DNA of 64,000 nucleotides from Basidiobolus meristosporus CBS 931.73 (GCA_002104905.1 MCFE01000414.1:1-64000); one strand, 5' to 3'; positions 2,750 to 57,700 are shown, counted from the stretch's first letter. Notes: generated from the sequence alone by a model not told the origin. Numbers and translations: made by a program.

Positions 2750-5250
2750 CTTGCATTTTCTAGTTCAATCAGTTCTCTGTGAAGTCAAATAGTTTTATGC
2801 TTAGCCTTTCAGTATTTCAGCATTAACTTTGAAATCAGTAGTATTAGTCAGCAGATGAATCAGCAGATCCTTATAGCCAGATATAGATACATCAAGTGAG
2901 ATCCAATTGGGTGATGATGATGCAATTAAGTGAGTCATCAGCAACAATCTACATTAGGAGATAGAAAAGTTAGTAATTAATCAGGCAAAAATGTATATAA
3001 AGAGCTGCTGGAACCTCAATTAAGATCAGTTCAAGTTTTAGTTAGAACAATACTACCTAAACTCCCTAATCCTGTACAACTTTTATATCAAGGTATTAAT
3101 GCTAAGCCCCTTCATGAACAACAACCATTCAACTACTATTATTATATCTGGACAAGTTTCATTTTTCCAAAACACCTCTGAGATTCCAACATCTTTACCA
3201 TTAGAGAACTTCCTATGGAATAGATGTGTGGTGAAATAGCAAGGTGGGTTAAGCTGCAGATGTTACAAGTCTTCATATAAGAGTTATAGCAGAATATGGT
3301 TTTTGGATAGTTTTTTGTTCACTAAAACTTGAAATGATTGTTGATGAGGCTCCAGCAACTCCTTAGTATGGTAGTACCTGCAACATGACTTGTATTCCTA
3401 TCTCCCCACACATCCACTTCATGGGAAACTCCTAAAAGGTGAAGCAAGGCCCAATATTCTCCACACACTGTACAAGATAAAGTAGAGAATGGATACAGTG
3501 GCAGCAAAGATCCTCACATTCAGCTTTATGTTTGAAGTATAGCCACTCAAATTCTGCCACAAATCCCTTGCACACCAGCTGTAGATGCGTCAAGTTGGCA
3601 TTGGTGATCTGCGTCTGTATAAATCCTCCTATAATGTCCACATATGACTCCCAATACTTCCAATGTATTCTTGGTAGGAATGGCTTCTGAACACCACTTG
3701 AATAAACACATATCCAGTTTATACAGTCTCTGCATTTGCATTGTTGCATATGTGTATGAATATTGATTGGAGCCAGTTAGAAATACTTAGGGTAGCAGAT
3801 ACTCTTTAATATCTTACCAATTCTTTCAAATTTCTCTGGTATTTCAAAGGGCTCATTTTTCTTGAAATTCACCAGATATAACTTAGTCATAAATATAGGG
3901 ATATTATTGAAAAGCAAATGCATTGCTCCTAGTGAAAGCTTTTGCTCCAACCAATACCCTCTGTCTTAAGTGTTTCCAGTTTCCAATTAGTTCCATATTC
4001 TGGCCAATGGCTTATAGGTTGCCAACTTTGCTGCAATAGCATGCTGACTTCTTTACATTCTCTCTGTAGGAAGATGATGTTTTTAATGCTGGTGCTTGGG
4101 TAATAAGAATGCGTGCAAGTTATGGAGTGAATCCCCTGGATCTCACACATTCAACAGCAATACCATCCATTGTGCCCAGAAAAAATTGCTCTCTTGCTGA
4201 TGGCTGGGGTATTTCTGATGCTGAAAATAATATGTGCATTTACATGACAGCCATTTACCATTATCCTGCTGGAAAGCATGCAAAACCCATCCAGCAATGG
4301 ATACAGGTAACTATCCAGGTTGGATGGTGATTTAGGCTCAGATACCAGTAAGACTACCATCAGATTATTGCTCTGATACTGTAAGATGTGTGGCAGATTT
4401 GGATTGATCAGAATCAGTGGCCAGCAGGATTTGCTGGTAGAGTACTTGTTTAATGAGAATCCATCAAGTGCTAAGGCAAAGGCATCGTCAGAGAAACCTT
4501 CAAAGTAACCCTTGCTTCTTAGCTGTTTGTAATGTTTGCCATTTAATATATTGTATATTTTTGTGCTTGACTGATGCTGAGTGCAGTACTGTATAGCCTT
4601 TCAATGTTTGTTGGACTGCACTAGCTTCCTCAGATGGGGTATTACAAGAATATATCCAGAGTGTGAATAATGCTTTCCCTCAATGGTGGTGGATTCTGAC
4701 AACTTGAGCACATTGCAATGGTAGCATTTTCAAATGTGAATGCTATGCAACTGTGAACACATGCTCAAATCAGGACAGTCTCTGGATCATATGCTGCTAG
4801 CTGCATGAAGGTTGTCCACTTGTACTATGTACATGGTATGTTGCATCCTGGAATATTTTGGCAAGAAGTAGCAATAAATCCTTAAAGCCCCCATTACCAA
4901 TAATGGTGGAAATGCACCACTTCTCTAGCCACAGCATTACATAATTCACCAGTAGATGAATTACTGGACTCACTTGGCTCCATATAGTATCCTTGGCCCC
5001 TGTTTCTATGTGTGTTGTCTCATTGCATATTGGGACTTGACTGGGCTCATACATGGTACTATTGTTAGGGGAGATAGGCTCACAATCCATCAGTGAACCT
5101 TCTTTGTGAGAGCTATCACTCTGTGAGCCATATTCAGAAGGCTGAGGTGAGCCTAAAGGCATCACAAACTCACCTGACTCAGTTTGTGTAAAGTAACAAG
5201 GATGGCCAAGTGCTAACATAAAAGTATCAACTGGCTGGCAAGATAATGTT
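2750..5250 (-). mobile_element. Decayed CACTA/EnSpm transposase (Transposase_21/Tnp2 type) pseudogene
   Basis: Minus-strand fragments: *ACVHSCIAFTFENATIAMCSSCQNP (YDxCxxxC motif, ~4660-4790); IYNILNGKHYKQLRSKGYF..FALALDGFSL..SCWPLILINPNLP..VSEPKSPSNLDSYLYPLLD..FSGHNGWYCC*MC (4130-4560); FVAEFEWLY..CIHSLLYL..IGP (3430-3600). Many stops and frameshifts. Confidence 0.85.
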
Positions 5251-12431: not shown

Positions 12432-15400
12432 TCATGATGTGCCTGGGTTGCTACCACCTACGGTCTGCTGGCAAAGATGATTGTAGTGGACGGAGTGGGC
12501 CAGGTTATTATGCTGGGTGCGACATTTGTCCCCGTACCAGCAGTCAGGACGGGAGGTTAGCTCGGTTGGGAGCTTCTGGGCATTCAAACGTAGGTATTCA
12601 GACACCACCATGGACAGGAGTTTAGTGCCACAGCCGCTGCACACCTTGCTGTCATACGAGAGTGGCATGGATGGGGACCATGATCTCTCGTATGCATTGG
12701 TCTCGATGACCAAATCCTTTACCCGCTCATGGAAGAGGTTGTTCATGGAAATTCCGTTGTAACGGAGGAAGGAGTTGGCCACACACTGTTCAAAGCTATT
12801 GAACCCAGCGAGGTGATCATTGCCGAACTTCAGTTCGCTCAAGTGCTTGATCTCGGAACCCTCCTTGTTGCACAGCGAGCAGTAGTTGTGGTCCTTCACC
12901 AGCACGATGTATTTGAGTCGGATTTGATCCACGTTGTATACGATGTACTCGTTATGGTTAAGGGAAAATTCGATCTTCCGCTTCTTGGAATCAAGCTTCG
13001 CCGCCCGTTCAATTACCGGTCCCTGAGGGATGATAAGCCCATCATTATCATGCAACGCTTTTCTGAAGTCGGGCCCGTAGCGGCCCAGCCCCTTGGTACT
13101 TAGGAAACCGTCCGGTGCTGACTCCATGTACTTGGCCTCAGTCGCCTCGAACATATCCCCTAATGCTACCTCACATAAAAGCAAACAGCTGTAGCCTCTT
13201 GTCGCATTGCTGTCATTGATGGAGTAGCCCACGGACTTATCGAACATGTCGGCAAAGTAAACGCCCTTTCCGAACATGTAGCCGGTGCATGGGGCCTCCA
13301 CGGGGGCCACGCGCAACCCTTGAGACAGAATTCCCAGGTAGTTGGAGAATCTCGAGCCATGCCATAGTAACATTCGGTTGCTGTTTTGACTAAATGGCTT
13401 GAACCGCTCCCGTTGACCAACTTTATCTAAACTCCATACGTTCATGAGCTCATAGTTCTCCGTACGTCCCGACTGGTGTAGATAGTTGTTGATCCGCAAA
13501 AACTCCTCGCTACCCTTACCAACCTCTGCCCAATTACATCCAAGCGCACTGTAGCAATAATCCAACGGGCTCCGAATCTCCGCTCTATACTGGGCGGCAA
13601 GGATGATATTTGCCCCGCCATTGAGATACCTCAAGTTTTCCAGGCGCCTTGTCTCCTCCTGCAGTATTTCCTTGGTGGTGATCGACTGAATCCCCCGGAG
13701 CTTCTCGTTCCTGTATGGGATTTTCCGGAAGTAGTGATTACTCATGGTGGCTAATCGCTCCCTCATATCCTTAACCACTCTATAGTCATAGTCCAAGCTA
13801 TTTTGAGCTGCTGTAAGTTCATTTACTGCCTCGCGGATGTTGCATAGTGTCTGGTAGCCCTCCTCGATGACGCTTCTATCCAGGTATCCTAGAGGAATGT
13901 CTGTATCTTTATCCAGCATTACCTGCTTCATGCTGGTCACATCACAGAATAACTAAAGTCCAAGAGATGAGCTGAAGAGTTCTGGTTTCCATTACATCTG
14001 AGTCGAGCATACCTTGAGAGTCGCTTGCAGTGACAAAGGTAACTTACTGGGGGAGCACTTCTTGAAGTCAATAGGCTTGAGAGGCACTTGACGGTTGTGC
14101 ACATTCCGAGTCACCACAAAGCGATCATCCTTCTCCACAAACTCCTCGATTGAACGGTTTTCCCAATTATTGCCGGTTTTGGACTTGAAGATCTTCTTGA
14201 ACTCATTCTCCGCTTCCTCTTTGCTCTGGAATGGTGTCCGTTGATGCATTCCCTATTAAACCTCCCCCCATCAGATACTGGATCACTTACATCAGGTGCA
14301 TTCATACCACCTACCTCTTCACCGATTTGGCCCCACCTGGTCCACACAAAGTAGATGTCTTGGATAGTGTTGTGAATGAGCTGCATCTTGTAGAACATGT
14401 TTATCCCGTGATAACCACGTCGAACGTCGGTCTTGTTTAGCAGAATATCATAGGGCTCATCGTTGGCATCGATTAAGACCTTTCCGACTTGCGCAAGTTG
14501 CGACTGAGGCTCGATCTCCACCTTTTTGTCCCAATCGTCCGGCAGCACCCCTCCGTTCAAGAGTTTAGCTTCCTCCTCCTTCTTCTTGAGATCCTCGAGC
14601 TCCAACTTCCTTTTCTGCAGATCCGCGTCCCCATGAACGTCCACGGGAAGCAGTTCGTGTACAGGGTCCACATCCATATCCTCAGTGTCGTGGCTCGAAC
14701 TCTGGCGTTGCGTCTCTGAGGTTTGGGTAAGATAGGGACTAAGCACGTCGTAAAGCTTGCTAGATTTCTGGGATGCAACATAGTCCGCCGGGCTTTTTCC
14801 GTAAATATCCTTTTGATTGATCAAGGATTCCAGTGCCTCAGGACTCAGATACTGTTGAAGCATCTTGAATGCCTCCACGTTATCATAAGTGGCGCTCTTA
14901 TACGGGGATACAATCACATGCAAAATTGATCGGTGTTCGTCATCAGTCTCCGTAAGATCCATCGTGGTCACACCGTTTGGATGCTCGAAGAGTATCTTGA
15001 GGGCTTCGACACTATTCAGCATAACTGCGTGGACCAATGCATTGACGGGCTTGTCCGACAGTAGATTTTCCTCATTGATGCAACTCTTGATGTTGGGATC
15101 AGCGTTCAAATTTAGCAGCTATTTGCAACCAAGGTTAGGTTTTGGGTGAGCTTAGGTAAAAACTAAGGATGCTACGCGGACTTACTCCGGTTACAAGCTC
15201 TGGATTGTTTCTGATTGCATATTCAAGTGGAGTTTGGCCAGTGATGGGGTCAATCAAGTTTACATTTGGATGCTGTCGCTCAAGCAGCTTTCGATGCTCC
15301 CGGAACAACATGTTCTGCTTGAATAGGCATCTGTAGTAAATTGTGGCTCCTGTTTTAGCGTCCACATCATCTACAGAAGCGTTGTGCCGCAGCAGTGGTA

Positions 15401-18400
15401 CAGCAGCAGCTGTATACGTCTTCATAGCGAAGAGTAGAGCCGATTCTCCTGTAATAGGATGCTTAACATCACACCGGACCCCGGCCCTTAATAGTACCTA
15501 AGTTATAGACAAATGTCAGGCTTGTAGATACTCTAGAAACAGTCTGGAGTCCGTCGCTCACCTCCACTATTTCCAGCTCTTGTTGGATCAACGCCAAAAT
15601 CAAAGGATGCGTCACCAATGTCTTTTTCTTTTTCTTGTCCAAGAAAGTGTAGGGGGCTGGCTGATTGATATCCCCACCTGCATCTATGATGACCTAGGAT
15701 ACAAGAGTTCTATGAGTCTAAATCTGCACAAGCGGAACACGTGCGACCCATACTCACCCTCAAAAAGTTTCGACGCCGGTCGATCGCGGTACCATCTTGG
15801 AAAATACTTCTCATGACAGCATTCTGCTCCATCTTATCAACCTCTGTGCTAGCTAGAGCGCCGTAATTCAGCAATAACTTTATACGCAAGTTCAGAATTA
15901 TTGCTAACACAACTTGGTGAACTAAAAATTCGTTACCTGAAGAAGCGCCATGTTTCGATGACCGGTGGCCATTGATATGATTGATTCGTGCTTCGACATA
16001 TCATACATATCCGGCTTCCCACCTTTCGCCAACAGCAGCTGCAAGCCGATCAGCATTAACCCATACAACAAAGCCGCATGACCACTTACCTTAGCTATCT
16101 CCATGTTATTGTCTTTGACTGCATACCATATAGCAGTCTTTCCTTCGCCATCAACTGCATCAAGGTTGGCATTCTTCTCAAGGAAGAATTTGGTGAGGAT
16201 CACATGTTTGTTGATGGCTGCAAAATGTAAAGGCGTCTGGGAGTTTATATCGGTATGATTAATGTCGATGTCATGCTTCTCAACCAGTTGAAAGATTTCT
16301 TCCGCATACTCTTCCCAGTCGCTAGTTCGGAAAAGAGTTGGCCACGGAGATGGTGGTATCTTTGGGAAACAGAAGGGACTTACTTGCTGAGGGTACGGAA
16401 ATTAGCGAGCACGTGATACATGTTCCGGTTGTCTTCATTGATTTCAGTAAATTGTGCAGGCTGAGCCTTCGAAAGCAACATAGAAGCCAAATGGAATTGT
16501 CCTAGAAGAGTATTCAGCACTGGTGTCTCATCTTCCGGAATCACTCAGCTTACCTGCAGATAATGTGTCGCTAATTGCTGCCAAGAGGTTGATTCCGCAG
16601 TCCATAATCTGGTACGCGAGAGGCATGAATGATCTATGCATGGAATAGTAGAAGGTGGAGGTTTTGGAATTGGCTACTTGTGGCAAACGCATTTCTCCCA
16701 CACTACGAACACCACTATTTGCCAGCATTATACAATGCTCTACATGCCCGTAGATCAATCCAATTTGGAATGGCGTCAGTCCATCGAGGTCTACTACCTC
16801 AGTATCCACCTTCCGCTTCAAAAGGGTAGTTGAGCAAGTGAATGCGCCCAGTCTAGCGGAATAGTGCATCGGAGCTCTTCCAAATGAATCCTGGATGTCC
16901 AATCTCAATTCGTTTTGCTCAAGGAAGTACCTCAGAATGTCAATTGGGTCGTCTTTAGTGTGCTTGAGGTCTTCCTCGGTTTCCCAAATTTGACATTTAT
17001 ATATCCCGTTAAAGAGGGATGAATCTTCATTGTGCAGTTTCGATGGCTCTTTGGGGTCATCAGGTAGTTTCTGCTGTAGACCCTCCGATAGCCATGTCTC
17101 AAGGGAGTCACTCTCCAATTCGAACTTTCGGACTTTTGAGAGCACTATCTCGCGTTCGCGCTCTTGCTCTTCGATGGATATCCGCGCTTTATCCATTTTC
17201 CGCTTGATTGGGATTGTAAGCTTCATAAACGGAATCTGGTGAGACTTCACGAAAACTAAATGTAAAGGAGTTCGGCCCTGGTAATCTTGGGCATTAATAT
17301 CAGCACCATACTGTAGGAGCAAGCTCTCTATCCTAAAGGATTTGTTGGCTTGTTGACGAGAGTGGTCACAAGTATAATGCAACGGGGTCTGATTGTACTG
17401 ATCGGTTACTCTAGGTGAAGCACCTGCTTCTAGCAAAACCTTTACAATCTTGTAATTCCGGACATTAGAGGCGTGATGTAATATCGATAGCCCTAGATTA
17501 TCTACACATTGAACATTAGCCCCAGTCTGAAGAAGAAGGTGCACCAGATCTGGGTTGTTCTGTTTCACAGCCTCTATCAAAGGCGTGGAATACGTAGGAC
17601 TGGAGCGCGTTTGGCTGTGAACATTTGGATCAGCACCACATTTGATTAATAATCGAGCTATTTCCAAATTATTGTTGATGCACGCCATGTACAAAGCTGT
17701 TTTCTCACTCTTGTTCATGTTGTTGATTCGCAGCAAGTCGCCAGTGGTTCTCGATTCCCCAGCTAATTTGGAAGCAACATCGGCACCATCGATTAGGAAT
17801 TTAACCATCCGGGTCTGGTTGAGGTGACTGGCTGAAATCAGTAGTGTATCGCGCACATCATTGATGGTAGAGAAGTTAATGGAAATTTCCCCGGGATTCT
17901 TGCCCAGTATCTTTCCCAGAAGCTTTTCTTGTTGGCTATTAATGATCTGCATTAGAACAGACGTGTTTTTACTGTCGACAACATTCAGATCGGATGCTGC
18001 ATCCAGCAGTATCTATATTGTAGATAGAGATTAAAATCTGACTGGGCCAGCGCTCCAAGTCTTACAAACCTCTGAAGCACGAGTTCGATTTTGGCTGATT
18101 GTCATCATTAAGGCAGACTCCTTACACTTGAAGGTGGTAACACTAAGGGCAGAGCTGATCTTCGATGGCTCCCAGTTTTCCCGCATATATGATAGTAAAA
18201 TCTTCAAGGCAGCAGTCTCGGATTGAACGGCGGCAATCATGATGGCTGTCTCGCCAGCACTATTCTGAAGGGAAGGATCGGCTCCACTATCGGCTAGCAC
18301 ACGGACGGACTCTTGCCATAAATCCTTTTCGGATTGGTAGCTGATCTTCAGGACCTTCTTGACTTCGTCGGTGAGTAGACTCTCGGGGAGACTCTCTTCG

Positions 18401-21400
18401 TCCAGGTATGAAGCAAGCATCAGTGGTGTTTGGCAATGGTTGTGTCTCTGTATATGGAGGTTAGGATTGCATCCATTTTGCAACAAGAACCTCAAAGGCT
18501 CCGAATCTTGCAGATTTGCTGCAAAATGTAGCAATCCCCATCCAGTTCTGTTAGGCTCCATTTCTAGAGTGGCCTTGGGATGCTTGAGATGGAAATCTTC
18601 AGGTAGTTGGAGCTGGCAATCCATATCGGGCTTCATGGTATTGATGAACTGCTGAGCTTCCTTGATCCAGAAGTCCCATCGATAGGTCACTGATTCCTCT
18701 CTCACCTTTGGGGTAGAGGATTTGGAGGCTTGTTTATATTCATAACTGTTGATATATTGCTTCAGCTTCTTGACCTTCTCCTTGAGTTTCTCGTACTGCG
18801 CATTGATGGCATGCACAAAAGACAACAGCAAGGGGGTGTATCCATTTTTGTCTACCTTATTCGCCAAACACTTCATACGATCATCATTCATTAGCACTTT
18901 CCCAATCTCCTGGATAGTGTTCCTTTCAGCGATAATACAGTCATTCCATTCCTGGGGTTCAGGATCCAGCTCATACGACTGAGACTCTGCTATTGCTCTC
19001 AAATAATAATGCAGAGGGGTTAGCCCGTTTCCGTACGATATATCCCAATAATTGGCACCATTGGTTATCAAGAACTTGATCATGTTCTTTCTATCCTTCT
19101 CCAAAGCTAACTGCAGCGGAGTTTGTCCAGCGTTGTTCTTCACCTCCATTGGTGCCCCCTTCTCTAATAGCATCTGGGCAATCTGAGTTTGCAATTTGGC
19201 CACCTCTCCATCAGCGAAACGCGCCTCTGCATCGCATGAACCTTCCGTGGGATACTTTCCGACGATGGCATTGATGTTTGACCCAACTAGTATGTGCAGT
19301 GGAGTATCGCCGTTGATGTCTTTGTAAGAAACGTCGCAGTTGCTGTTTCCTAAAAGGGCGGAGATCTTCCTAAGAAGGCGCTCCGATTCGTATGCCCTAT
19401 TATCCTTATTAACCCAACGATTGGACGTGTCCTTACCTCTACCTCTAGGGACCAACTTGGATCCAGCATTTTCATCAACGAAAAACAAGTTGCAGCAGGT
19501 GTGAAGAATGGTTCTCCCACTGGTATTCGGGATGTTGATATTGATCTGCGGATTGTTGATGAAGTAGTCGACAATCCGCATGTGACCCTTTCTATCCGCA
19601 ATGGACAGGGGTGATGTCTTCCAACTGTTCACAGCATTGGGATCGGCACCCCCCACTTCAACCAACAATTTGGTCAAGGAGAACCATCCATATGCAGCTG
19701 CATAGTGAAGCGGATTGTTTCCGGAGGTGTCTCCAGCATTTACATCCACCCCACAAACTTGAAGAAGATACGCGGCTATTTCGTAGTGGCCATTCTTACA
19801 AGCAAGATGGATGGGCTTTCTCTTGAACTTGTCATCTTTTTCTGGATCAGCACGTCCGTTTTCCACCAAAACTTTCACTGCCTCCAGATGGCCCATCTTT
19901 ACTGCATGGAACAATGGGGTGGCTTTGGTTTCTTTGTCCAACAGGTCTACGCTAGCACCACACTCAAGCAGTGCGGCGATAGTCTTTGGATGGCCGTAAT
20001 GGGCAGCAAAGTGAAGGGCGGTCCAGCCTTGGCTCAGTGGAGTAGTGTCGACCACCCCATCACCTAACGCCTCTAGCAACAGCGGTATTATATGGCTCTT
20101 CCCATATTTAGCGCACAACAATAATGGGGTCATCCGGTAATTGTCCATCTTCGTGAGATTAAAACTCTTCTCAATCAAAAATTTCAATGGCTCCACGCCC
20201 TCACAAACAACCGCAAAATGAGCAATGGTCCGGCCCATGCTATCTTCTGTGTTCATTTCTGCAGTAGTCAAAGCATTGCACAGCTCTCGCAAATACCTGT
20301 CATCTGGATTTAATGCGGCCAGCTGCAAGGGATTGATGGAATTATTTCTGGATGCCATTTTAAGAATTTGGTTTCGGCGGTAACTGGTCAGAGGTTGGCC
20401 ATCCTTAGCGCTCAGTACCTCCCTGTGCAGGTGATTAAACCCATAGTCTTCACCTAGCTCACTAACCAAAATGAAGGAAACCTCTCTATTACCGGCGGCT
20501 GCTGCTTCGTAGAGACCGGAGTTTTTCAAGAAAAAGTCGGCTTGCGAGTCGGTAACAAGTAAAAGCTTGGCCATCTCGGTAGTCAAACTTGAATTGCGAA
20601 TGGTATGCACCAAAGACTCAATTTCCTCAACGTCCCAGTGTGCCCTCCGTTTATTGTGTACTTCGAAAGGATCGAAATCTATGCTCTGGTAAAACGCATT
20701 GTCTCCCTCTCGATTTCCGCGTGCCTCCTTTACCATACCAACTGCAAATCCCAACGTATATCTGGAGAGATAATTTGCACCATTATAGCCCAACCCGTCA
20801 GAGCCCGAATTGGGGATACTCGGGGCTATTCTAGATTTAGTTGCCAGAAGCAGGTTACGAACGATCCGGAATTGGTTTCTTTCCAATGCTATACGCAACG
20901 CTGAGTCGTGCGTGACGTCGGGTCTACGGCCATGTCTATAGTCAGTGATGTTTTTTGTGTCATTGTAGACCTCATCAAATAGCGGTATGTTTGTCAACAA
21001 GGGATCGACGGTTCGTGAATCCTTGTCGTCATCATCAAGATCATCCGCAGCAGTGCATGAATTTGAAATTTGGTTATCTTCAGTCGAGTGGTCCATATCA
21101 GAAGTACCCGTGGACAGATCAGGTTCGGCGAAGAAGGCAGCGCGATTGAACTCACGAGAAGCGCATACCATACAACATGATATATCTGGATGGTTAGGCT
21201 CGTCAACATTGAAATCAAACCCACTCCATGGGGGGACTTCAATTTTCAGTCGATTCCTGATGCGTTCGTTGACCTCTTGCTCGTGCTGCATCCTGAGCAA
21301 TTCGGACTTCTTTGGAGCCTTTACCTTGGGGGACTTCGGAGTCTTTGGAGTCTTCGGGGATTCAGACTTGACTTCACTGCTCTTACGCTTTCGTGGAGTA

Positions 21401-22029
21401 CTGACTATTTCCTGTGATCCCTCGAGAGGCGCGCTGAGCCTATCTTCCGTTTTGTCCGCCATCTTGCGTTTGTTTCTGGACCTCTTCGTGGTGGGTGAAC
21501 AAACCTCCCAATCGGGGTCCGTAGACCGTTCCTTATGATGGGATCGGCGCTTTTTTTGGGCACCGGGTTGGAGCTCCTCCTTCCAGTTGCTAATCAAACT
21601 TTGATCCAAGATGTTCTCCTCCGGCTCCCAAGAATCGTCATCCGAGTCATAGCCGGTCCACTTCACCCGGTAGTATGTGACTCCCTGGTTCTCGGTTAGA
21701 GTCCACACTATTGGACGGCCACGTGCCAAAAATACTTCTTACCTCCTCCACCTTGGAATCTACAATTGCCTCAGCAACGTAAATATCGTCGTCCTCGTCG
21801 CTGCTGAGACAGTTCGTAGCCCCGTCGTTTTCATGAAAACGGCCGGTATCTGTAAAGAAACAGGTGTTGAGTTGAAGAGGGGACACAAGGCAGGAACGAA
21901 GCCAGGCTAACCATCGGCATCCTCCAGATAACCACTTGTGGTTTTGATCAGGGCGGGGGTGGTGATGGCGAGTTTTTTGTTCTGGCTCCGTAAAGGATAG
22001 GATTTGGTTGTGGTGATGTCGATGCTCAT
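12432..22029 (-). CDS. Giant multidomain poly(ADP-ribose) polymerase: chromodomain + >20 ankyrin repeats + WGR + PARP regulatory + PARP catalytic + CHFR-type Cys-rich/PBZ zinc finger (~2,959 aa, 13 exons)
   Basis: Manual splicing gives one continuous frame. Exons: 22029-21912, 21849-21743, 21684-18070, 18012-16554, 16501-16384, 16321-16090, 16038-15937, 15877-15758, 15693-15562, 15497-15186, 15118-14315, 14252-14013, 13952-12432 (8,880 nt); all introns are GT..AG, 51-67 nt. Motifs: chromodomain YVAEAIVDSKVEE|GVTYYRVKWTGYDSDDDSWEPEENI; ankyrins such as GWTALHFAAHYGH, GNNPLHYAAAYGW, QTPLHFAAINKH; WGR FYKMQLI...VWTRWGQIGEE|GMHQRTPF...EFKKIFKSKTGNNW; catalytic LLWHGSRFSN...GYMFGKGVYFAD...CEVALG...NEYIVY; C-terminal RPDCWYGDKCRTQHNNLAHSVHYNHLC. 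Exon 1 and the start codon are the least certain part. Confidence 0.93.
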
Positions 22030-23932: not shown

Positions 23933-24620
23933 TCAACAGAAAGTGCGGCAAAATGGGGCGAAGCGATAGCCTGTCGAATTCAACACACTGGAAGAGTTGC
24001 ACTTATCAAGAGCGGGCTCATCCGATATGTGGGCCATGCTGAAGTGCTTCAAGAGGGTGGATTTCTTGCGGAAACTGTATACGCGACCGGATTCGAATTA
24101 GATGCAGAACATTGATAAGATCTTCGCAAAAAGACATTACCTCTTGCTGCAGCTAGAGAAGTGGCACTGGTATGGACGGTCTCCTGCGTGGATTCGCCGA
24201 TGGCGGCTGAGCGAGCTGCTGTCACTAAACGATTTTAAGCAGCCCTCCCATGAGCACTGGAACGGTCGCTCGCCAGAATGGGTGCGCATGTGGATGGTCA
24301 GCGAGGATTTCTGATGGCAAGGTAGCTCAGTCATTGTACGATGGATTGATGCAGGCCTGTAGCGCACCTACCTGTATAAAACTTTGACCGCAACCAGACT
24401 CGGTACAAATGAACGGCCTGAAAAACAAAGAAAGCTCAGGATCAGCTGCTGGAAAACGGAACTGCCCTGCTTGACGGCATTACCTCTCGTTTGTGTGAAT
24501 TCTGTGATGTCTTAGCAGATCCGCCCTTCTCTTGAAGGCCTTCTTGCAGCCAACCCAGAGGCACGAGTACACCCGTTCCTCCGCTGCTTGTACAGGGTTG
24601 ATCAAATCCAGAATATCCAT
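23933..24620 (-). CDS. Small C2H2 zinc-finger transcription factor (4 fingers, 4 exons, ~170 aa)
   Basis: Spliced frame: MDILDLINP...[29 protein letters not shown]|[15 protein letters not shown]|[56 protein letters not shown]|[16 protein letters not shown]...stop at 23933. Canonical (T/S)GERP-type linkers. Start codon uncertain. Confidence 0.85.
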
Positions 24621-27600
24621 GTGTGGGGTCGATAGACTTTGTTGGTGGTGTAGAGAGAATGTCAGAGGAAGGTAGACTCTCGGGACCAAAATGATCGCAG
24701 AGTTGCTAGTAAATGTGTGATGAATGCCGGCACCGATAGCGATGACATGCTTATAAATCGTGCTCGAACCATCTGTATTCATCCATCCACTCCCTAAAGA
24801 ATCAAATGTCTACTTGGGTGCCACTAGTATCACCTATCCATGATGTGCCTATGGTCAATACCCCTTTTTCCGTCTTGATTGTGGTTTCAATCAGGACCGG
24901 CCTCCCTAACAGTTGATATTGGATCCCCAGATGCACGATCCGCTTTGTTTGCTGGAAACCTGATGGCGTATCATGCAAACAGAGATCCATTCCTGATGTA
25001 GATAAGCCATACAGCCAATCAGCCGCCTCGGAGGCCCCTTTGCTGTCAATCCATTGAGTTGCCCAGCATTGCTTGAGACACGATCCAAACTCTCCAAGGT
25101 TGCTGATGAAGCTAGGCGGTCTGATCTCAGGCCTTCCGAGACAGCTTGGAGCAGTAAATGGCAGAGTTTCACAGCAGAATACTCCGCCATGTGCTCGCCA
25201 ACCAGTCAAACGCCATGGGACCTCTGATTCTTGTCCGGATGAGGATTACCATGGTCCCTGCACAAGGATTCCACTGCAATATGTCCTTTGACCGTACTAT
25301 GATTGATTTAGCAGGTGCCTAGCCAAATAAAGCTACATCGAAATCCGGAGGCTCACATCAAGTGCACGCACCATTTCCATGCTACGAGCCCACCGAATAA
25401 CCACCTCACTCACTCCATTTGCCAACTGGGGACAGTGGCGGGTCAATGAAATGCTCCAAGCCTTCACTCATTGATTATAGCTAATGTCTCTGACCCCAAG
25501 ACTGGACCAACTACTTCACGGATGGTCAATTACCATCAAACAGCCGAGTCTCCTGAATGATTCCGAAGCAAGTTGGCCAACGCCCTCACATTGGGACTGT
25601 ATCCAGTAAAGGCAGTCCAAGATCTTCATGTACGGTATCGGCGATGCTCAGCCCAAATCTAGAACAAACTTACCGATGTTTGTGATGATCAGAGAGTAAC
25701 ATTGATGAAACCGGCTGTGACGGGGGTGTAAAAGGACCTGAGAAGAATGGCTGAAGCCAATGTGCCACTCCTAACGGATTTTTTATGCATGCGTGCTTGT
25801 GGAATGGAGCGAGCCTAGTCCAGGAGCCGGTTGCTACGTAGAGTCCGAGTACGCACAGCTCTACTACAATCAACCCGCATGACAACCCAGCCTCAGACCC
25901 TCGACAACATAGAACGAACCAGACATATCCAACCTGAGCCATAAGAAAGTCGGTATCAATTACCGTTGCTGACCACCCTGGTGCCCCGAGGTGGTGAGGG
26001 GATGGATTACTCTTGGGGCTGGTGCTGCCGACAAAGAGCCAAGCCGATGTGGTCGGGCCACGGCAATCATTGTCACGTGTCTGCATCAGTTTTGAGTGCA
26101 GGCCAGCTAATTTGGAGCACCTGTAACATCGGGATGGTCCTCTGATGGACACCGTAAATGTGATATAATAGCACATAGGCTGGCTGTAATTCGCGTTGGA
26201 TCTGGTGGCCACATATATTAGTGTGTCCTGAGCGTCTCTCACTCCGGCCTAGCCGAAACTTCGCTTGAGCCATTACTGGTTCCTACAACACAGGAGATGT
26301 ACCGCCTATAGCTATGTACAAGGTTTGAACTGGGCACACCATTGACCGCAATCAAGACGGGACAGCCGGAATCCAGAGACAGCAATACACTGGGCTTTGC
26401 GACCATTGAATCTGGAGCACGGACGGATTTCCTGAAGAATCAGCTGGGTGCTTTACAAGCATACCCACATATCAGACATTCAAGCTTCAAACCAGGTGCT
26501 TGCATATGGATGGCATCATCGAAATGAGCACTGCTCATCGGACATGGGCACATGGAGGATGAATCCTGATCTTCACCCATTGCTACATGAGGAGAGGATT
26601 CAGCTGGGTAGCACCTGTACTACTAGACGACATTCTGCTTGGCGATTCTATTACGCATATCGATGCAACGGATGGCCACATCCGCATATCCTTGGCTAGT
26701 ATTCTTTGCTGCTTAGTAATCGTCCGGCTAGAGGCGATTGATTCGACGTATTTGACAGACCGATATTTTACTCCCCAATTTCCAATGGAGCATGTGCGCG
26801 ACAACTTCATTTTTAACCCAACTTGAAATATTCCACTCCCAGCAACATGGTATGGAGGTAAGAATAGCCGGAACCAGCCATGAGTGATAGGAGTACTTGC
26901 TTGAATTCAACGGATCCAAATATGCTAAAGTCTTGAGCGTTTTCCGAGCCATTCATGGTCAACACATCAAGAAGCAAGTTCCATTAAACCCTTTGGGAGA
27001 ACCCATTACATGAAAGGCCAACTATATATATATATATATGCTTTAAACACATCCATCCAATCCCTGCAGGTTGACCGAAATTCCTCTTCCACCTCGTACT
27101 TGGCATGCAGCTTAGATGGATAATTAAAGCATGCCTGCGGAACTTGTCTATCGCCCAACCAAGAAGCGCGAGCATAAAGGTTATCAGCTGCTCAAAAGCA
27201 CCGAGACAAGCTTCCATGAACTATCGTTGAGTTGAGAAGAATGGTTTGCAAGTTTTTGAGTAGCATTGCGATTCGCTGAAGGGCTGGCTAAGCTTGGAAA
27301 GATATTGCACAGCACAAATCGGCCAATGCTTATTCAAGCACATAATGCAATAAATGTTGGTTTATTGGCAGTTGAGTAGGGGCGTGAAAGTTTTCTGAAA
27401 TTGTTAAGAGTGTGTTTTCGCTTGGTTTCTTAAGCAGAGGCGTTTTTTGTACTTGGTAATGCTACACAAATAATTTGTGGAAGGCCATGTCCGAAACGTG
27501 GTTAGATATATATATACGATTAGCTAGCTCGGCACCGGAATTACTCAAATTACATCGGTTGTACTTAGCCAATCACTGGAATCTTGACTATTCTACTGAG

Positions 27601-29188: not shown

Positions 29189-32100
29189 TATTGATGCACA
29201 ACACTTGGAGATATTGAAAGTGGTTGGGAGAACAAGTAGATTATGTGGTTTTCACTTAATGATTTATTGAATGTAAAAGTAGTATTTATACTTTTACATG
29301 TTCTTGACATTGAAGAAATGTAGAATAGGCCTAAGAAGGCCCCAAGAACATGTATGCAAAGTTTGGGGCTCTTTGGACAACTTTGAAAATTTTCATGCTC
29401 TGGGTACCTGGTTTTTGGTGATAATTTTCTAAGTAAATCCCAGTAAGGAATTTGGTCAGTATTCTCTAGGATATGAAGGTAATGATCTAAGTGACTAAGT
29501 TAGGTGAATATTTAGGTGGAAATACAAATTTTATAACACTCCCACTCAGCTAAATGTTCATACTGACTAGTCCTAATTTTGACCTAAGATATTCACACTT
29601 GTCTCTAGCTAATGGTTTGGTAAATATGTCTGCAATCATTTCATCTGTAGGACAGTAAACCAAGCTAACTAAGTTATTCTCTATAGCTTCACATAGAAAA
29701 TGATGACTAATATCTCTGCGCTTAGTTCTAGCACAAAAAGTTGGATTTCTACCTAATTGTATACATTGTTGATTATCATAAATAACATGCTCTGCATTTT
29801 TTGACATAAGCCTAAATCTTTGAGCAGCTTCCTGAGCTATATTACCTCTTTGGTAGCTTCACAGGCTACTATGTACTCTGCCTCTGTGGTAGAAAGTTCT
29901 ACAGTTGGTTGCTTTCTTGAATTCTATGAAATTGCTCCTTTACAGTAAAGAAAGGTGTACCCTGTGGTGGATATCCTGTCTTCTAAGTTTTGTCCCCAAT
30001 CACCATCAGAGTATCCCCCAAGATCTTGTTCTGAATCTTTATAGGTGTACCTTTAGCAGATATCAGCAGCTTCTTTAGGTATCTAATAATCTGCTTAACT
30101 GCTGCAATATGATCAGATCCATAGTTCTGATTATGCAGGCTGACAACTCCCACTGAATATGAGATATCTGGATGTGTTCCAAGCATGCTATAGGTCAGAC
30201 CACCAATCATAGATTGGTAAGGAAAGTCAGGGCTTACAGATGGCACCAAGTTCACTTGATTTGGATGAGTTTTACCAAGTTAAGGTTTGTCTTCATTGGT
30301 GTAGCTGCCAATTTACAGTCTTGCATTTGGTACTTCATTAGTACATCTTGAATATACTTGTATTGGCTTAGGGCAATAATCTGGGTACTTCTGTCTATGG
30401 AGAGCTTTATCCCTTAGTAGTAACTGAGCTCTCATAGATTGGACTTCTTGAACTCTTTAGATAGGCTGGATTTAGTCTCTCTGAATGTTTCTAGATTCTT
30501 AGTGGCTATAATAAGACCATCCACATATATAGCTAATAGAACTGGATATGCTTTATCTGGCTTATAGTATATTCTATAGCAAGCATTACTTCTTTTGAAG
30601 CTCATATATTCTATATAAGAATATATCTTGCAATTCCAGGCTCTTGATAGTTGTTTGAGTGCATATGTAGATTTTTTAAACTTGCAGACCAAATGGGGGT
30701 TATCTTGGTGAGCAAACCCATCAGGTTGGCTCCTACACAGGTCCACAGCAAGTTCTCCATTCAAAAATGCAGCTTTTAAATTCATTTGGTGTATTAAAAC
30801 CTGTATTTGGCTGTAAAAGCCAATATTAATCTGAAGAAATTAAACTTGGCTACCAGTGCAAAGGTCTCAGAACAGTCAAGTCCCTTTGTTTGACAGTATT
30901 CTTTGGCTACAAGTCTTGCTTTGTATCTTTAAATTGTACAATCAGCCATGTATTTTGTCTTGAAGACCCATCTGCATCCATTTGATATCTGGTAGATTGG
31001 TAATTTGACTAAGTCCCAAGTTTGATCATCCATCAGGGCCTGATACTCCTCAATCTTTGCAGATCTCCAAGATTTTGTTTGAAGGCTATTTAGGACCTCT
31101 TTTACAGTCTGGGACTCATCAATATGGACTGAATAGGCATAGGCTGAGTTTGTACCCTCATTGATATAGTAATATGGGCTATTTCTGGTTTGGTTGGGTC
31201 TCCTGGCTTGTAATACTGCAATGATCACTTCTGGGATATTCCTGGACACTGATTCAGGCTGAATCCTGGTTGTAGAGTTCTCTAGAGTAAAGAATTATCA
31301 TTGTTTTGCTCCAACTCAACCTTGACAATTGGTCAACACAAGAACAAAATTTTGTCGTCATCTGATGTCATTTTTTGTGAAAATTTTGAATTTTAATCAA
31401 GCAACATATACCTGGACTTATTCAGCTTCTTTGCTTTAGTATTGTAGAGTCTGTATGCTCTACTCCCATTGCAGTAGCCCAAAAGTATGCATTTTACACT
31501 TTTTGGCTCAGATTTCATGTGATTCCTGGGCAGTTTCTTGGAATATGCTGGAAGCCCAGATATTTTTGGATGTTCTGCTCTTGGTCTCTGTCTATACCAT
31601 GCTTCAAATGGAGTAGAATCACAAATTATTCTGCTATAACTCCCATTTTCAAGGTATAAAGCTGTGGCAGCTGAATCTGCCCAAAAATCATAGGATACTT
31701 GTTGATCATGAATCATAGATCATACCATATCAATTATTGATCTGTTTGCACATTCTGCTACTCCATTCTGCTGGGGGGAGTATGGTTGAGTAGTGTCTTG
31801 CTTTATCCCATGAATTTTGCAGTAGTGGATGAAGAGTTTTGAGATATGTTCTCCACCATTGACAGAGCATATTATCTTGATTTTTCTTCACCAGTTTCTC
31901 CCTCCACCATAGCTTTAAGCTCCCTGAGCTTGGAAAGAGCTTCTTTGTTTCTTTCAATGAAGTAGACCCACATGTATCTTGTATGATCATCAATAAAAGT
32001 GATCAAATACCTCATCCCACCCAAAGATACATCTTGCATTGGTTCACACCAATTGGAATAAATTAGATCTATTTCTCCTTAGTTTTGATTAATCCAGAGC

Positions 32101-41367: not shown

Positions 41368-51525
<10,158 letters not shown>

Positions 51526-51910: not shown

Positions 51911-54227
51911 CTATTCTAAATATTGCATCAACTCTGAAATACGCTTTCGTTCAAAGAGAGCAGGATCCTCAGGATTTTCGGAGTCGCCGTCCCCGAGGTT
52001 GGTGAGGTAATCTTGGAGTGTGTCTTTGACGACTTGGAGACTATAGCTCTTACGGCTTAGAAGCATAACGACGCGCTTCTTCAGCTAAAAGTAAATGCCA
52101 TGAGTTGGATGAATTGGAATAGATGGAAACATGCTATGCCATAAATGGATAATACTCACAACTTCGTCTTGTTTGCACAGATACCCGATGGAAATGGCAG
52201 TCATTTGGAGAGTGAATAGGCCAGCATCCAATCTTTTGAGGTAAAATTGGGTTTCATCTTCACTGGTGATTTCTTCCTCTTCGGCCAAAAGCTCTTGCTT
52301 TGAGCGTTCAATCTCCTCATTAGCCAACTTAGCCTTCGCTATGTAGGCTTCAAATAGCTCCACCAATCTATCCACTTTCTCAAAGTCATTCTCGTTGAAT
52401 TTGTTGAAGAGGCGAAGTCGATCCACGCCGTCAGGAAGATATCTCAGCAAAGAAACAATAATGCACATTACGTGTTCTTAGAAAAGGTTAGTGCTTATAC
52501 TTCGTTGTATGCGTATTCGCTACAAGATACCTTCTTCTTCTTTGTCGGAGAAGTTTTTGTATGCTTTCTTCAGCTTCTTAACTCCCTGGTAGTATGCTCC
52601 TAATTAGTAATCAGGCTGGTCTGTACAGGTGTAGGAAAGGCACTTGCCTTTTTCATGAAGACGGAGAAGAGAGTTTTGAGGCCCAATATATCAACAAATC
52701 GCTTACAATTATTGGCACCGGCGGCTGTGGCAGTGGCGTAGTTCAATACCTTGAGAGCTCTCATTCTGGACATCACCTTTTCCCTGAGAAAGGATGAAAC
52801 GGTTACTGAAAATTCTTTTCTATTTTGGTAGGACAAGCTTACTTCAACATAATGAGCATTAGCTCATTTCCTTCACACTCCAAGAAGATTGGTTTGCTTT
52901 CGGGCTCCTGGAGACAGGAACTGAGCGCATCAAATACGTTCTCCATAAATTCTATCTCATCGGCATCCTTTGGGTCTTTGCGTTTATAGGACTAAAATAT
53001 GTTCAGTCCGGTGCTGGCAGGTGGAAGCAAACAAACTACACCTACGTTGAGAACCCGGAGCATCTTATCGATTCCATCCAATTCGTTAGCCTTAAGGCGA
53101 TTCACTCTGCTGTCTTGGAATAAAATGGCTAAGATTTCACTGCAATATTGCTTGTTAGAGTCCATAGACTTGACATTGATCCGGTTTAACAGCCAGGAAA
53201 GAACCGGCGTAGTAGAAACAATAATCTCGGCGATCTCGGGCTCAATAGATATGAGGTTTTCAACCACAGCTAACGTCTGGAAGACACCATTTCTATCCTC
53301 ATTCAACGATTCGTCTAGGCGGTTTAGGTTTTGAATCAAAATATCTAAACCCTGGTTGTCGACCTGAAGAGAAATTGTTAGCTGCCGATGCTTTCCGAGC
53401 AACGACAAAAATGTGGGACTCACCAAAGCCTGAACAAGCAACTTCATCGATTCCTCTGCTTCCTCATTAGTTCCGTCGTCATCTTCTTCGGTCAATGCAT
53501 TAAGTAACTCAACAGCAGATATAGCAATATCTGTATTTTCATGGCTCAGTAATGACAATATAGAGGCAACTGCGTTCAGCTCTATCAAGTTTGTATACAT
53601 CTCGGGCGCTTCACTAATAACCGCGAAATGCTTGATTTCTTCGTCTAGTTCTGCTTCGGAGTCTAAAAATCTGAAAGGAACGAAGGTAAGCATCAATCAT
53701 TCTGCACTAAGATCTAGACGATGGAAAAATACTAACTTCTCCGGGCTATCAGGAAATTTCATCCGCATTTCTTGGTTTTTATTGATAGCTTTTTCTAACT
53801 TTAATACCATCTTCTTGACGCCATTAACGTCAAAAGTTTCAGCCTAAACAGAAGTCAGTATACAGCGTTTTATGAAACATGATCTAGTATTCTACCTCAA
53901 GTTCATCACCCGCGTCAACAAATTCGAAGATGTTACGTTGTTCGTCAGTCAATCCGTCACCAAAAAAGCGACCTTCTGAATCGCCATCTAGCTCCTCGCT
54001 CTCTTGAGGTTCCTGCGCTAAGATTGAGCTCTCACCCTCCTCTTCTTCGCGAAATTTTTTTAGCATTTCGAGGGAAGGAGCAGCGGGCAATTTCCGCTTG
54101 TTTCTACCACTAGGAATGGCAGGTGCCTGAAAAAGTCGACGAGGTAGGAAATTTTAATGATGCATTCTTAGATCGGGTAGTGATCAATACCGATGTGGGG
54201 TACCTTGAATAAGCTGTTAATATCCAT
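51911..54227 (-). CDS. CTNNBL1: Beta-catenin-like protein 1 (Prp19/CDC5L complex armadillo protein), multi-exon
   Basis: MDINSLFK|APAIPSGRNKRKLP; EGRFFGDGLTDEQ; FLDSEAELDEEIKHF; SLLSHENTDIAISAVELL; KQYCSEILAILFQ; FVDILGLKTLFSVFM; EKVDRLVELF; FYLKRLDAGLFTLQ; stop at 51911. Confidence 0.93.
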
Positions 54228-54705: not shown

Positions 54706-57700
54706 CTAATACTCACCATGATCGCCTGTCACGTTCAACATCGTTTCCTCCATCGAGTCCAGAGGTGGCGAAATAACTCCATTTCGGGCAGTCCGCTCAG
54801 CACGGGATCGGATCACCTTCCCGTTGTTGGCAGTGACGCTTTGATAAGCCTCCAAATCTCGCTCTAAACGCATGACTTTGATTTTGAATTGATCGCGGGC
54901 CTTCAGTAAGGACAAGTTCTCCTTTTTCAAGACGATGTTCTCTTCTTTGAGCTGAGTGATGTGCTTGATCTTCTGCTTGGAGTTGTTGTGGCCTAACAAC
55001 TTGGCATTTTGCCCACTGAGTTTGGCCAATTCATCAAAGGCCATGGAATGCTTCTGTGCAAGGAACTGGGATTGAAGTTGCATCTGTTCCTCGATTTCCA
55101 TGCGGGCGTTTTCCGCAGCGTTTGCTTTACATCTTAATCTGTCCACCTCTAGCATGAGCTTCTCCACCTCCGCTTCGGCATTGTTGGCGATCTGGGCTAG
55201 TCGTTTACGCTCAGATAGCCACGAAGACATATCTTGCTCGATGCGACGGGTCAAACTTTCGATCTCCCTTTCTTTACGAGTGAGCTCACGTTCTGTTTGT
55301 TCCAGTTGCTGTTCTAGTATCTGGGTGGTGGCTTTGACATGGGCTTGGGATTGCTCGTTCATCTGAGCCATCTTGGTTTCCAGCTCTTGGATACGTCGCG
55401 CCTGAGCTTCGCTGGTGGCAAGGATAGCTGCTTTCTCCTTCTCTGCTCCCTCGGTTAACTGTCGGCGCTCTTCCTCAAACTCTTCACTCATTTTTGCCAA
55501 CAGAGACATAGCAAGGCTTGCTTCAAGTTGGTCTTTGAGCTGTGTTATCATTGAAACCTGCGCACTGAAGTGTGAGAGGTTCTGATAGATGTCTCTTTGA
55601 ATCTGAGCATCGTGGTGTGAGGAATTAAGGTCTTGGCGTAAGAGAGAGAGTTCACTACCAAGAGAACTGACTTCATTTTGTAAGTGCAGCACTTCCTCAA
55701 ATCCATCAGCATCAGATTCAGTAGTTCGAAGGGGCATACTCTCGAGCATGTCATTTAGATCGTTGGCTTGTTGGACGTGTGCCTCTAGCTCCTCTTTTAG
55801 TCCATCTATCTCATTTTCTAAAACTTGGATCTGTAGCTCCTGCTCAGTGGCTTTTGCAGCTAATTCTTGGATTCTAGTCGTTTTCTGTAGCTCCATTTCT
55901 GTTCTCTGGGAATATTGGTCCTTGAGATCCAGGAGAAGGAGTTGAATATGTGAATCACGCGCCTCGACCTCGCACTTTGTAGAAACCTGGGCTTCCACAA
56001 GTTCCACACTGGCTTGTTGAAGCTTCGAGTTTAGTTGTGCGATTTCATTCATTGTCGACTCTTTGTAGAGCTGAAACTCCTGTCTGGCACTATCGATGCA
56101 ACTTTGAAGAAGAGTCACTGCATTTTCATGGGATTCTTTCCCTCGTACGAGTTTAATGTTAATGGAATCAATAGCTTCGTTCAACTGCGCGACTTCGTTT
56201 TCCTTAGAGCTATGATGCGCATCACGCTCTCTGGTGACGAGGCTTATCTTGGCATTGATCTCGTCAACTCTGGAGGCGCTGGTCTCACGCTGCTGCTCAA
56301 GCTCACTGTTCACCTGATGCAGCTTGCTCTTCAATCCGCTCAGCTCTTCCGATTTCGATTGGCGATACTGCTCGAACTCCTGGCTGATTTCTTGGATGCT
56401 TGAGCCCAGATTCGCAGCTTGATCAGCGCTGGAAATACGGAATGCCTGGAGGTCATGGTTGGCCTCTAATATCGTATGCTGAAACAAGCTGAGTTCTTTT
56501 TGGATGGAGACTGTGCTGGCCTGCTTTTCCTCAAGCTTCTCGCAAAGTTCCTCGATGGAGGATTGGAATGTTTCAGATTCTTCCACATGCTTGTCTTCCG
56601 CTTTCTGCAACTCACCCTTGATTGACTGAATCTCTTGATTCTTGGCTTCCATCTGATCATTGAACTCCGCGGCTTTCTGCTCAATGATATTCTGGGTAGC
56701 AGTCAGCTGGGACTCAAGATCATGGACGGATCCTTCCAGTTCCTTGCGCTGCTCGGCAAATGACTCGGTAGCCTTGGCAAGCTCTCTGTTCGCGTCATCG
56801 ATAGTGGTTTGAAGGTCTGATACAGTAGACTGCAGATTGTCAATTTCTCGATCGTGCATGGTCCGTATCGATTCAAGCTTTTGTGTATGCTCCAAGAAAA
56901 GTGCTTCTCTTTCCGAGGCACTCTGTTCTTGGAACTTGGCGTGTGTCTGGGCCCCTTCGTCAACCTTGGCTTCCAACTGGTCAATAGTGGCTGCTTGCTG
57001 GGTTGTTTTCTTCTCAAAATCATCCAGCTGCTGGCTATGTACTTCCTGAAGATGGGCAATCTCTTCCTGATGTTGATGGGTAAGTGTGTTTTTCTCTTGT
57101 GCCCAGCTTTCTCCGTCTTGACGGCGCCCATCGATCTCCGTCTGCAACTTCTGCTCCAAACTGCTGATGATTTCTGCTTGAGCAGAACGCTCTTCGCGCA
57201 TTTGCTGCTGTAGGTTGGCGATTTCCAAGTCAAGCTGCTTTTTTATGGCCTCGAGCTCACTGATACGCTTCTCGAGGGCTTCCTTCTCTTCCGCCCACGA
57301 AAGCCGTTGCTGGGTCAAGTCCGACTCCGTCGATTCAAGCCTTTCAGTCAACGACTTGACTTGCACATCCTTCTGAGACAAATCCTGGGCATACTGAGCA
57401 CTCTGGCTGTCACGTTCAGAAGATAAGCGTTTTAGTGTGACAGTGAGATTCTCGATTTCGTTGAGAAGATCCGATTTCTTCGTCTCTGCTTGTGACCGAA
57501 CCTCGATCAGTTTGTCTTCTAAAGACTTCACTTGAACTTCAAACTCGGAGTTCTGTTTGCTTCTGCTGGCGTCCAACTCGTTGTAAAGCCTTTGCGACTC
57601 GGACAAACTTTGATTCAAAGTCTCAATTTGTCCTTCATAGGAAGATCGCCTCACTTCAAACTCCTCCTCCAGGCCAACCTTGTCTTGAGCTAGCTGATCC

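Follow-up and report, generated by a model that had tools for sequence, protein, structure and literature searches.

The locus and its gene model

The window, i.e., the whole stretch of 64,000 nucleotides of Basidiobolus meristosporus CBS 931.73 DNA that was analysed (MCFE01000414.1:1-64000), contains on its minus strand one large predicted gene (22029-12432) with 11 exons and a product of about 2,850-2,900 residues. The parts of this product are, in order, a chromodomain, a linker of about 400 residues, long ankyrin arrays, a WGR domain, PARP regulatory and catalytic domains, a CHFR-type cysteine-rich domain, and a PBZ finger (Table 1). A TATA-like element (tataaaag) lies approx. 40 nt upstream of the likely start codon, and the stop codon is at 12432-12434. 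Short canonical introns can connect the stop-free minus-strand segments between 21.7 and 12.4 kb, with phases that are consistent across the 11 exons, and the junction peptides conform to the pattern of ankyrin repeats, to the WGR motif, and to the regulatory domain of PARP1. From these phases and peptides, the chromodomain is predicted to be spliced to the ankyrin-PARP exons; the least certain junction is the intron at 16.4-16.5 kb. The earlier note had placed a chromodomain, ankyrin repeats, and a PARP in one polypeptide, and a single phase-consistent gene model with an intact H-Y-E triad bears out this arrangement as a prediction.

The chromodomain itself is split by a 58-nt GT-AG intron. 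Exon 1 ends in phase 1 (G), and the AT opening exon 2 completes the codon. The 107-nt exon 2 (hereafter exon A) ends with the residues ..SSDEDDDIYVAEAIVDSKVEE, and its last stretch, DIYVAEAIVDSKVEE (21787-21743, DIY from 21787), is the first strand of the chromodomain and bears the first cage aromatic. The second intron, with the boundaries GTAAGA...tCTAACcgagaaccAG, is followed from 21684 by the start of exon 3 (exon B), GVTYYRVKWTGYDSDDDSWEPEENILDQSLISNWKEE, which opens a frame of 1,217 codons. Removal of this intron is required because the frame of exon A closes at 21647, whereas the 1,217-codon frame does not begin until 21738. Among 32 frame-compatible GT-AG pairs, the sole donor that starts with the GTAAG consensus is that at 21742; use of the alternative acceptor at 21691 would merely add two residues to a loop. 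The join between exons A and B is thus a prediction that follows from the logic of frames and splice signals. As a result of this organisation, the first strand of the chromodomain occupies a small separate exon of the type that gene models can miss.

Degraded remnants of transposable elements (TEs) are present on both sides of the gene, each approx. 8 kb away: a Transposase_21 (tnp2) remnant and a copia-type reverse transcriptase (RT) remnant. Gag and SH3-like pieces occur elsewhere in the scanned flanks, and the TE-bearing flanks are AT-richer. The earlier description of the gene as lying between two mutated TE blocks is therefore correct with regard to the remnants themselves, but they are not adjacent to the gene, since a C2H2 zinc-finger gene, approx. 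2 kb upstream of the PARP gene start, intervenes between the promoter and the copia remnant. The proximity to TEs is real but loose. Further along the window, the minus strand also bears exons of a checkpoint kinase of the ATR/Mec1 type, one exon that is catenin-beta-like (CTNNBL), and a coiled-coil open reading frame of 1,297 codons.

Table 1. Features of the window, with the predicted gene given from its 5' end; positions are counted from the first nucleotide of the window
Feature	Position	Strand	Remarks
Exon 1	21912-22029	-	Likely start codon ATG at 22029
Intron 1	21850-21911	-	62 nt, GTTAGC...TTTACAG
Exon 2 (exon A)	21743-21849	-	107 nt; SSDEDDD acidic run, then first chromodomain strand
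Intron 2	21685-21742	-	58 nt, phase 0, GTAAGA...CTAAC...CAG; CTAAC is the branch box
Remaining chromodomain (start of exon 3)	21574-21684	-	Cage W and Y, loop SDDDSWEPE, C-terminal helix
Linker	20350-21573	-	About 400 residues; first third K-, S-, and P-rich
First ankyrin arrays (rest of exon 3)	18066-20349	-	Ank_2, E 1.9e-69
Exons 4-8, further ankyrin arrays	15186-17996	-	Junction peptides match the ankyrin pattern
Proposed introns around exons 4-8	18065-17997, 16553-16383, 16089-15878, 15757-15694, 15561-15498	-	
Exon 9: last ankyrin repeat, linker, N-terminal half of WGR	14315-15118	-	WGR profile positions 1-43; preceding intron 15185-15119
Exon 10: C-terminal half of WGR	14013-14252	-	WGR profile positions 43-76; preceding intron 14314-14253
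Start of exon 11: PARP regulatory (helical) domain	13551-13952	-	PARP_reg, 8e-14; preceding intron 14012-13953
PARP catalytic domain	12894-13511	-	PF00644, E 2.1e-58
CHFR-type cysteine-rich domain and PBZ finger	12435-12818	-	PBZ at about 12551-12477
Transposase_21 (tnp2) remnant	4154-4600	-	E 1.8e-11
C2H2 zinc-finger coding pieces	24137-24782	-	
Copia-type RT remnant	30435-30839	-	E 5.9e-26
ATR/Mec1-type kinase exons	44473-47139	-	UME, M-HEAT_ATR, and FAT domains
CTNNBL exon	52992-53696	-	
Coiled-coil open reading frame	54706-58599	-	End HMMR_C-like

The chromodomain and its relationship to MPP8

Exon B alone matches the Pfam Chromo family (PF00385; curated cut-off, 25.1 bits) with an E value of 1.1e-9 and 38.5 bits, over positions 17-52 of the 53-position profile. 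Exon A alone is too short a piece and gave no significant profile match; against a local profile derived from library chromodomains, it covers positions 2-17, flush with the exon end, and its Y (DIYVAE) falls on the cage Y of the profile in a weak alignment (5.3 bits for a 16-residue piece). Within KWTGY, the cage W and Y line up with the solved CDYL, MPP8, CBX2, and Polycomb (Pc) chains, and the cage acid is present as the D located four residues past the Y of KWTGY. The third cage residue is thus Y, as in HP1, MPP8, and CDYL, whereas it is W in Pc and CBX2. Three aromatics and the acid having been found, the earlier observation of three intact cage positions holds, and the domain is confirmed, as far as sequence can do so, as a genuine, cage-intact canonical chromodomain of the HP1/Pc/CDY/MPP8 class.

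The earlier note also proposed that this domain closely resembles that of human MPP8, and the MPP8 segment that it quoted is correct, as the solved MPP8 chains read KVLYKVRWKGYTSDDDTWEPE. The resemblance was analysed by segment-wise scores against solved chains, in which the first 24 residues (two strands and the acidic loop) were compared with the whole 43-residue piece (Table 2). The acidic loop of the domain, GYDSDDDSWEPE, is of the CDY/MPP8 type: CDYL, MPP8, and CDY1 score 29-31 bits over this half, while HP1, Chp1, Clr4, CBX2, and Pc score 22-24 bits, and the identities amount to 15/23 for CDYL (GYDSEDDTWEPE in the loop) and 13/21 for MPP8. Over the whole of exon B, however, CDYL, CBX2, Pc, and MPP8 lie within approx. 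2 bits of each other (33.8-31.6). The ranking flattens because the helix part, ENILD..LI, matches Pc and CBX2 (18/35 identities with Pc) and not MPP8; the alignments with MPP8 (residues 2-27) and CDYL end at residue 27, after WEPE.

Table 2. Scores (bits) of the chromodomain piece against solved chromodomain chains
Chain	First 24 residues	Whole piece
CDYL	31.4 and 30.8	33.8
MPP8	29.7	31.6
CDY1	28.9	31.4
HP1beta	24.3	28.3
Chp1	23.6	31.4
Clr4	23.6	29.8
CBX2	23.6	33.3
Polycomb	21.9	33.1

What remains of the close resemblance to MPP8 is therefore the acidic loop SDDD(T/S)WEPE, since CDYL stands above MPP8 in both comparisons; MPP8 is also not the nearest family, as CBX2 and Pc likewise outscore it over the whole exon. 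In terms of sequence likeness, the domain is a mosaic within the canonical HP1/Pc/CDY/MPP8 class, with no likeness that is specific to MPP8. CDYL and CDY are the top-scoring solved relatives of exon B and, like the gene described here, fuse a chromodomain to an enzyme-like fold, but in the CDY proteins this is a crotonase-fold domain accompanied by neither ankyrins nor PARP. Pc and CBX2 have the start of the helix (SWEPEENILD..L) in common with the domain but lack the acidic SDDD loop. The loop that MPP8 has in common with the domain characterises the CDY/MPP8 kind, i.e., a motif of one chromodomain subtype, and is thus uninformative with regard to a HUSH origin.

Ankyrin arrays and the PARP module

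No Pfam family was found in the scanned linker (20400-21555). The ankyrin arrays that follow match Ank_2 twice with high significance (E 1.4e-37 for the second match), and the top solved matches of this region are ankyrin-1, designed ankyrin proteins (DARPins), NOMPC, latrotoxins, and tankyrase-1; the best 60 of its 406 solved matches include no MPP8 chain.

The C-terminal part of the predicted product is of the PARP1 type. The H-Y-E triad aligns with PARP1 (LLWHGSR, GKGVYFAD, and NEYIVY), the catalytic domain matches PARP1 fragments with an E value of 1e-50, and, given these conserved residues, the module is likely to be active. At the very end, the CHFR-type domain scores below the Pfam cut-off (zf-CRD, 3.1e-4) and matches CHFR (2xoc) with an E value of 3.9e-11, while the PBZ finger is exactly at the cut-off (zf-CCHH, 9.7e-5). 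The product thus has WGR, regulatory, and catalytic domains, the H-Y-E triad, and ankyrins on the N-terminal side, which are the features of PARP1-clade proteins with ankyrins ('Clade 1-ank'). Judged by these domains, the gene encodes an ankyrin-bearing PARP1-clade enzyme of the chromo-tagged type reported in Mucoromycota.

The closest PARP relative found is a WGR-PARP-CRD protein (P0156) of Jimgerdemannia flammicorona (Mucoromycota), with 44% identity over 98% of the query; a search of the PARP piece against a collection of bacterial and archaeal contigs gave no match. The gene for P0156 (L001, 75-2508) begins 75 bases from a contig end, and the model behind its annotated product of 677 residues has probably lost the N-terminal part of a far larger protein.

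Relatives already reported

The chromo-ankyrin-WGR-PARP architecture has already been reported. A survey of 534 fungi (bioRxiv 10.64898/2026.07.25.740670, July 2026) described ankyrin-WGR-PARP proteins of 2,648-2,995 residues, a range that includes the length predicted here, with 4-6 ankyrin arrays in four Mucoromycota, two of which carry a CHROMO domain. As in the B. meristosporus product, tandem ankyrin arrays precede a PARP1-clade WGR-PARP module in these proteins. The likeness is drawn from their description, and the term PBZ is absent from the preprint text on them, whereas the product described here has a CHFR-type domain and a PBZ finger. In the same survey, ankyrin-WGR-PARP proteins are confined to Mucoromycetes and Umbelopsidomycetes, and only plain WGR-PARP proteins were recorded in Zoopagomycota (4/4) (bioRxiv 10.64898/2026.07.25.740670). 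The chromo-tagged ankyrin-PARP family therefore appears to extend past Mucoromycota, into Zoopagomycota. Gene models frequently overlook N-terminal chromodomain exons, as happened with Clr4 (PMC9963178), and a missed small exon for the first strand may be the reason why CHROMO was found in only two of the four species of the preprint.

Outside fungi, clade 1 PARPs with ankyrins are known from Dictyostelium (ADPRT3) and C. elegans (PME-5), in which, as here, N-terminal ankyrins are placed on a PARP1-clade catalytic module; the available part of the 2014 survey that describes them (PMC4245714) reports no chromodomain for either protein, whereas one is present in the B. meristosporus product. The same part of that survey states that PBZ was not found in fungi (PMC4245714).

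Possible function

It is reasonable to propose, with a probability of roughly 60%, that the chromodomain tethers an ankyrin-bearing PARP1-clade enzyme to methylated chromatin, probably H3K9me, and that the protein has no kinship with MPP8 or HUSH. In such a mechanism, the chromodomain would dock the enzyme on a methylated lysine, most probably H3K9me2/3, which is preferred because it is the main repressive mark described in early-diverging fungi; indeed, this role is documented for H3K9me in Mucoromycota, and most fungal lineages have retained Clr4 (PMC9963178). Once switched on, whether by breaks or by chromatin, the WGR-regulatory-catalytic module would make poly(ADP-ribose) at this site, as PARP1/2 do, while the ankyrin arrays might retain partners or substrates and the PBZ finger might bind the polymer produced. 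Should such tethering of a PARP1-type enzyme by the chromodomain occur, heterochromatin marks would be linked directly to ADP-ribosylation in one protein. Moreover, relatives of this protein are reported in Mucoromycota, a group in which gene knock-outs are feasible.

It is unlikely that the target is something other than H3K9me, such as H3K27me3 (as for Pc/CBX and CDYL), a methylated non-histone peptide resembling H3K9, or the enzyme itself, which the chromodomain would then regulate in cis. H3K27me is also read by CDYL-type and Pc-type domains, and non-histone H3K9-like peptides are read by that of MPP8. The C-terminal half of the domain, with its ENILD..LI helix, is best matched by Pc and CBX2, but the third cage residue, being Y as in HP1, MPP8, and CDYL and not W, argues against this alternative. 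Promiscuity is known for CDYL-type domains and for that of MPP8 (PMC7618375), and KMT6 is kept in some early-diverging fungal phyla (PMC9963178).

Another possibility, to which we likewise assign a rather small chance, is that the product is a tankyrase-like enzyme of telomeres or subtelomeres, the ankyrins of which recruit telomeric partners while heterochromatin of the subtelomeres is read by its chromodomain. The solved structures matched by the ankyrin region include tankyrase-1, tankyrases 1 and 2 similarly combine ankyrin arrays with a poly(ADP-ribose) polymerase domain, and the authors of the preprint, in their discussion, suggest for the Mucoromycota proteins that telomere maintenance may be connected with heterochromatin (bioRxiv 10.64898/2026.07.25.740670). 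However, tankyrases have a SAM domain and lack WGR and the regulatory domain, whereas Pfam found no SAM domain in the exons of the gene, in which WGR and PARP_reg are present. The catalytic module belongs to the PARP1 clade and membership in clade 4 (tankyrases) was consequently rejected; nothing in the sequence ties the gene to telomeres. It should be noted that a tankyrase-like role overlaps with the tethering of the enzyme to H3K9me and does not exclude it.

The tethering proposal can be taken further: in early-diverging fungi, a single chain that reads H3K9me, writes poly(ADP-ribose), and reads the polymer through its PBZ finger could be required to keep transposons, or chromosome ends capped by retroelements, silent or stable. 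The protein would then resemble HUSH or RITS in function but not by descent, but we consider this extension distinctly unlikely.

Proposed kinship with HUSH

The earlier note suggested that the gene could encode a convergent or ancestral HUSH-like effector; on this view, one chain would do the work of MPP8 plus TASOR, reading H3K9me3 on transposons and silencing them. Several features invite such a comparison. Human MPP8 also has an N-terminal canonical chromodomain with a cage of three aromatics and one acid, the loop SDDD(T/S)WEPE, and a long linker followed by ankyrin repeats, so that the order of chromodomain, linker, and ankyrins resembles the outline of MPP8; in addition, the same chain contains a PARP fold, and degraded TEs flank the gene. 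Nonetheless, this explanation is very improbable. MPP8 has five ankyrin repeats, a TASOR-binding PINIT-like domain, and no enzyme, whereas the predicted product has dozens of repeats and a PARP1-type enzyme. Its ankyrins are generic or tankyrase-like and pass directly into WGR-PARP, and Pfam detected neither PINIT nor SPOC nor DUF3715 in any exon, although MPP8's PINIT-like domain lacks detectable sequence likeness even to the PINIT of Siz/PIAS (PMC7618375). With CDYL scoring higher and PINIT unmatched, an MPP8 orthologue or HUSH subunit was rejected as a candidate.

A comparison with TASOR leads to the same result. The PARP fold of TASOR has lost almost all NAD-contacting residues and is a pseudo-PARP without an NAD site (PMC7532188). 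The module described here, on the other hand, has H, Y, and E aligned with PARP1 and PF00644 alongside PARP_reg and WGR, with no DUF3715 or SPOC, and a TASOR-type pseudo-PARP was rejected as well. HUSH activity requires the C-terminal domain of MPP8 (ankyrin and PINIT-like), while the chromodomain is auxiliary, its deletion merely delaying silencing (PMC7618375). In one review, moreover, HUSH is presented as a vertebrate system (PMC7619638). Because the resemblance of the chromodomain to MPP8 is no greater than that to CDYL or Pc, it provides no evidence for a HUSH-like transposon silencer, and the predicted gene product is probably unrelated to MPP8 and to every HUSH subunit.

Capture of the chromodomain from a chromovirus (Ty3/gypsy integrase), as a relic without reader function, has next to no probability despite the TEs near the gene and a CHROMO-integrase-RT PARP fusion in one Fusarium species (bioRxiv 10.64898/2026.07.25.740670), since the cage is intact, the best matches are cellular domains of the HP1/Pc/CDY/MPP8 class, Pfam found no integrase (rve) or RT (RVT) family within the gene, the flanking remnants are copia-type and Transposase_21, i.e., types without a chromodomain, and none of 20 library matches scanned with Pfam had an integrase or RT (one had a retroviral protease domain only); a chromoviral integrase chromodomain was thus rejected.

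Relatives of the chromodomain in sequence libraries

Searches that began from the long exon returned little. In a word-indexed search, the chromodomain within the 1,217-residue exon yielded three candidates, none significant, a blank of little weight given that neither MPP8 nor CDYL has an exact 5-residue word in common with it; with the whole exon, the search gave generic ankyrin proteins only, its length band excluding relatives of approx. 2,900 residues. Atlas look-alike searches returned nothing beyond generic chromo and generic ankyrin clusters.

Exon B, when compared with a representative library of 1.84 billion proteins, had 620 matches at E<=1e-3. The best 150 of these, ranked by summed score, are mostly proteins with 2-7 chromodomains, and ankyrin or PARP domains were found in none of the 20 matches scanned with Pfam. 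The strict loop motif occurs in 7 of 159 chromodomains drawn from the nearest library proteins. Among the matches listed, the best one with a single chromodomain (P0149, 44.7 bits) comes from a metagenome contig, on which no ankyrin gene was found beside it. The domain of P0149 (L002, 2619-2792) starts at the same point of the chromodomain as exon B (GVIQYRVKW), which may point to an intron at the corresponding position in an unrelated gene of an uncultured eukaryote.
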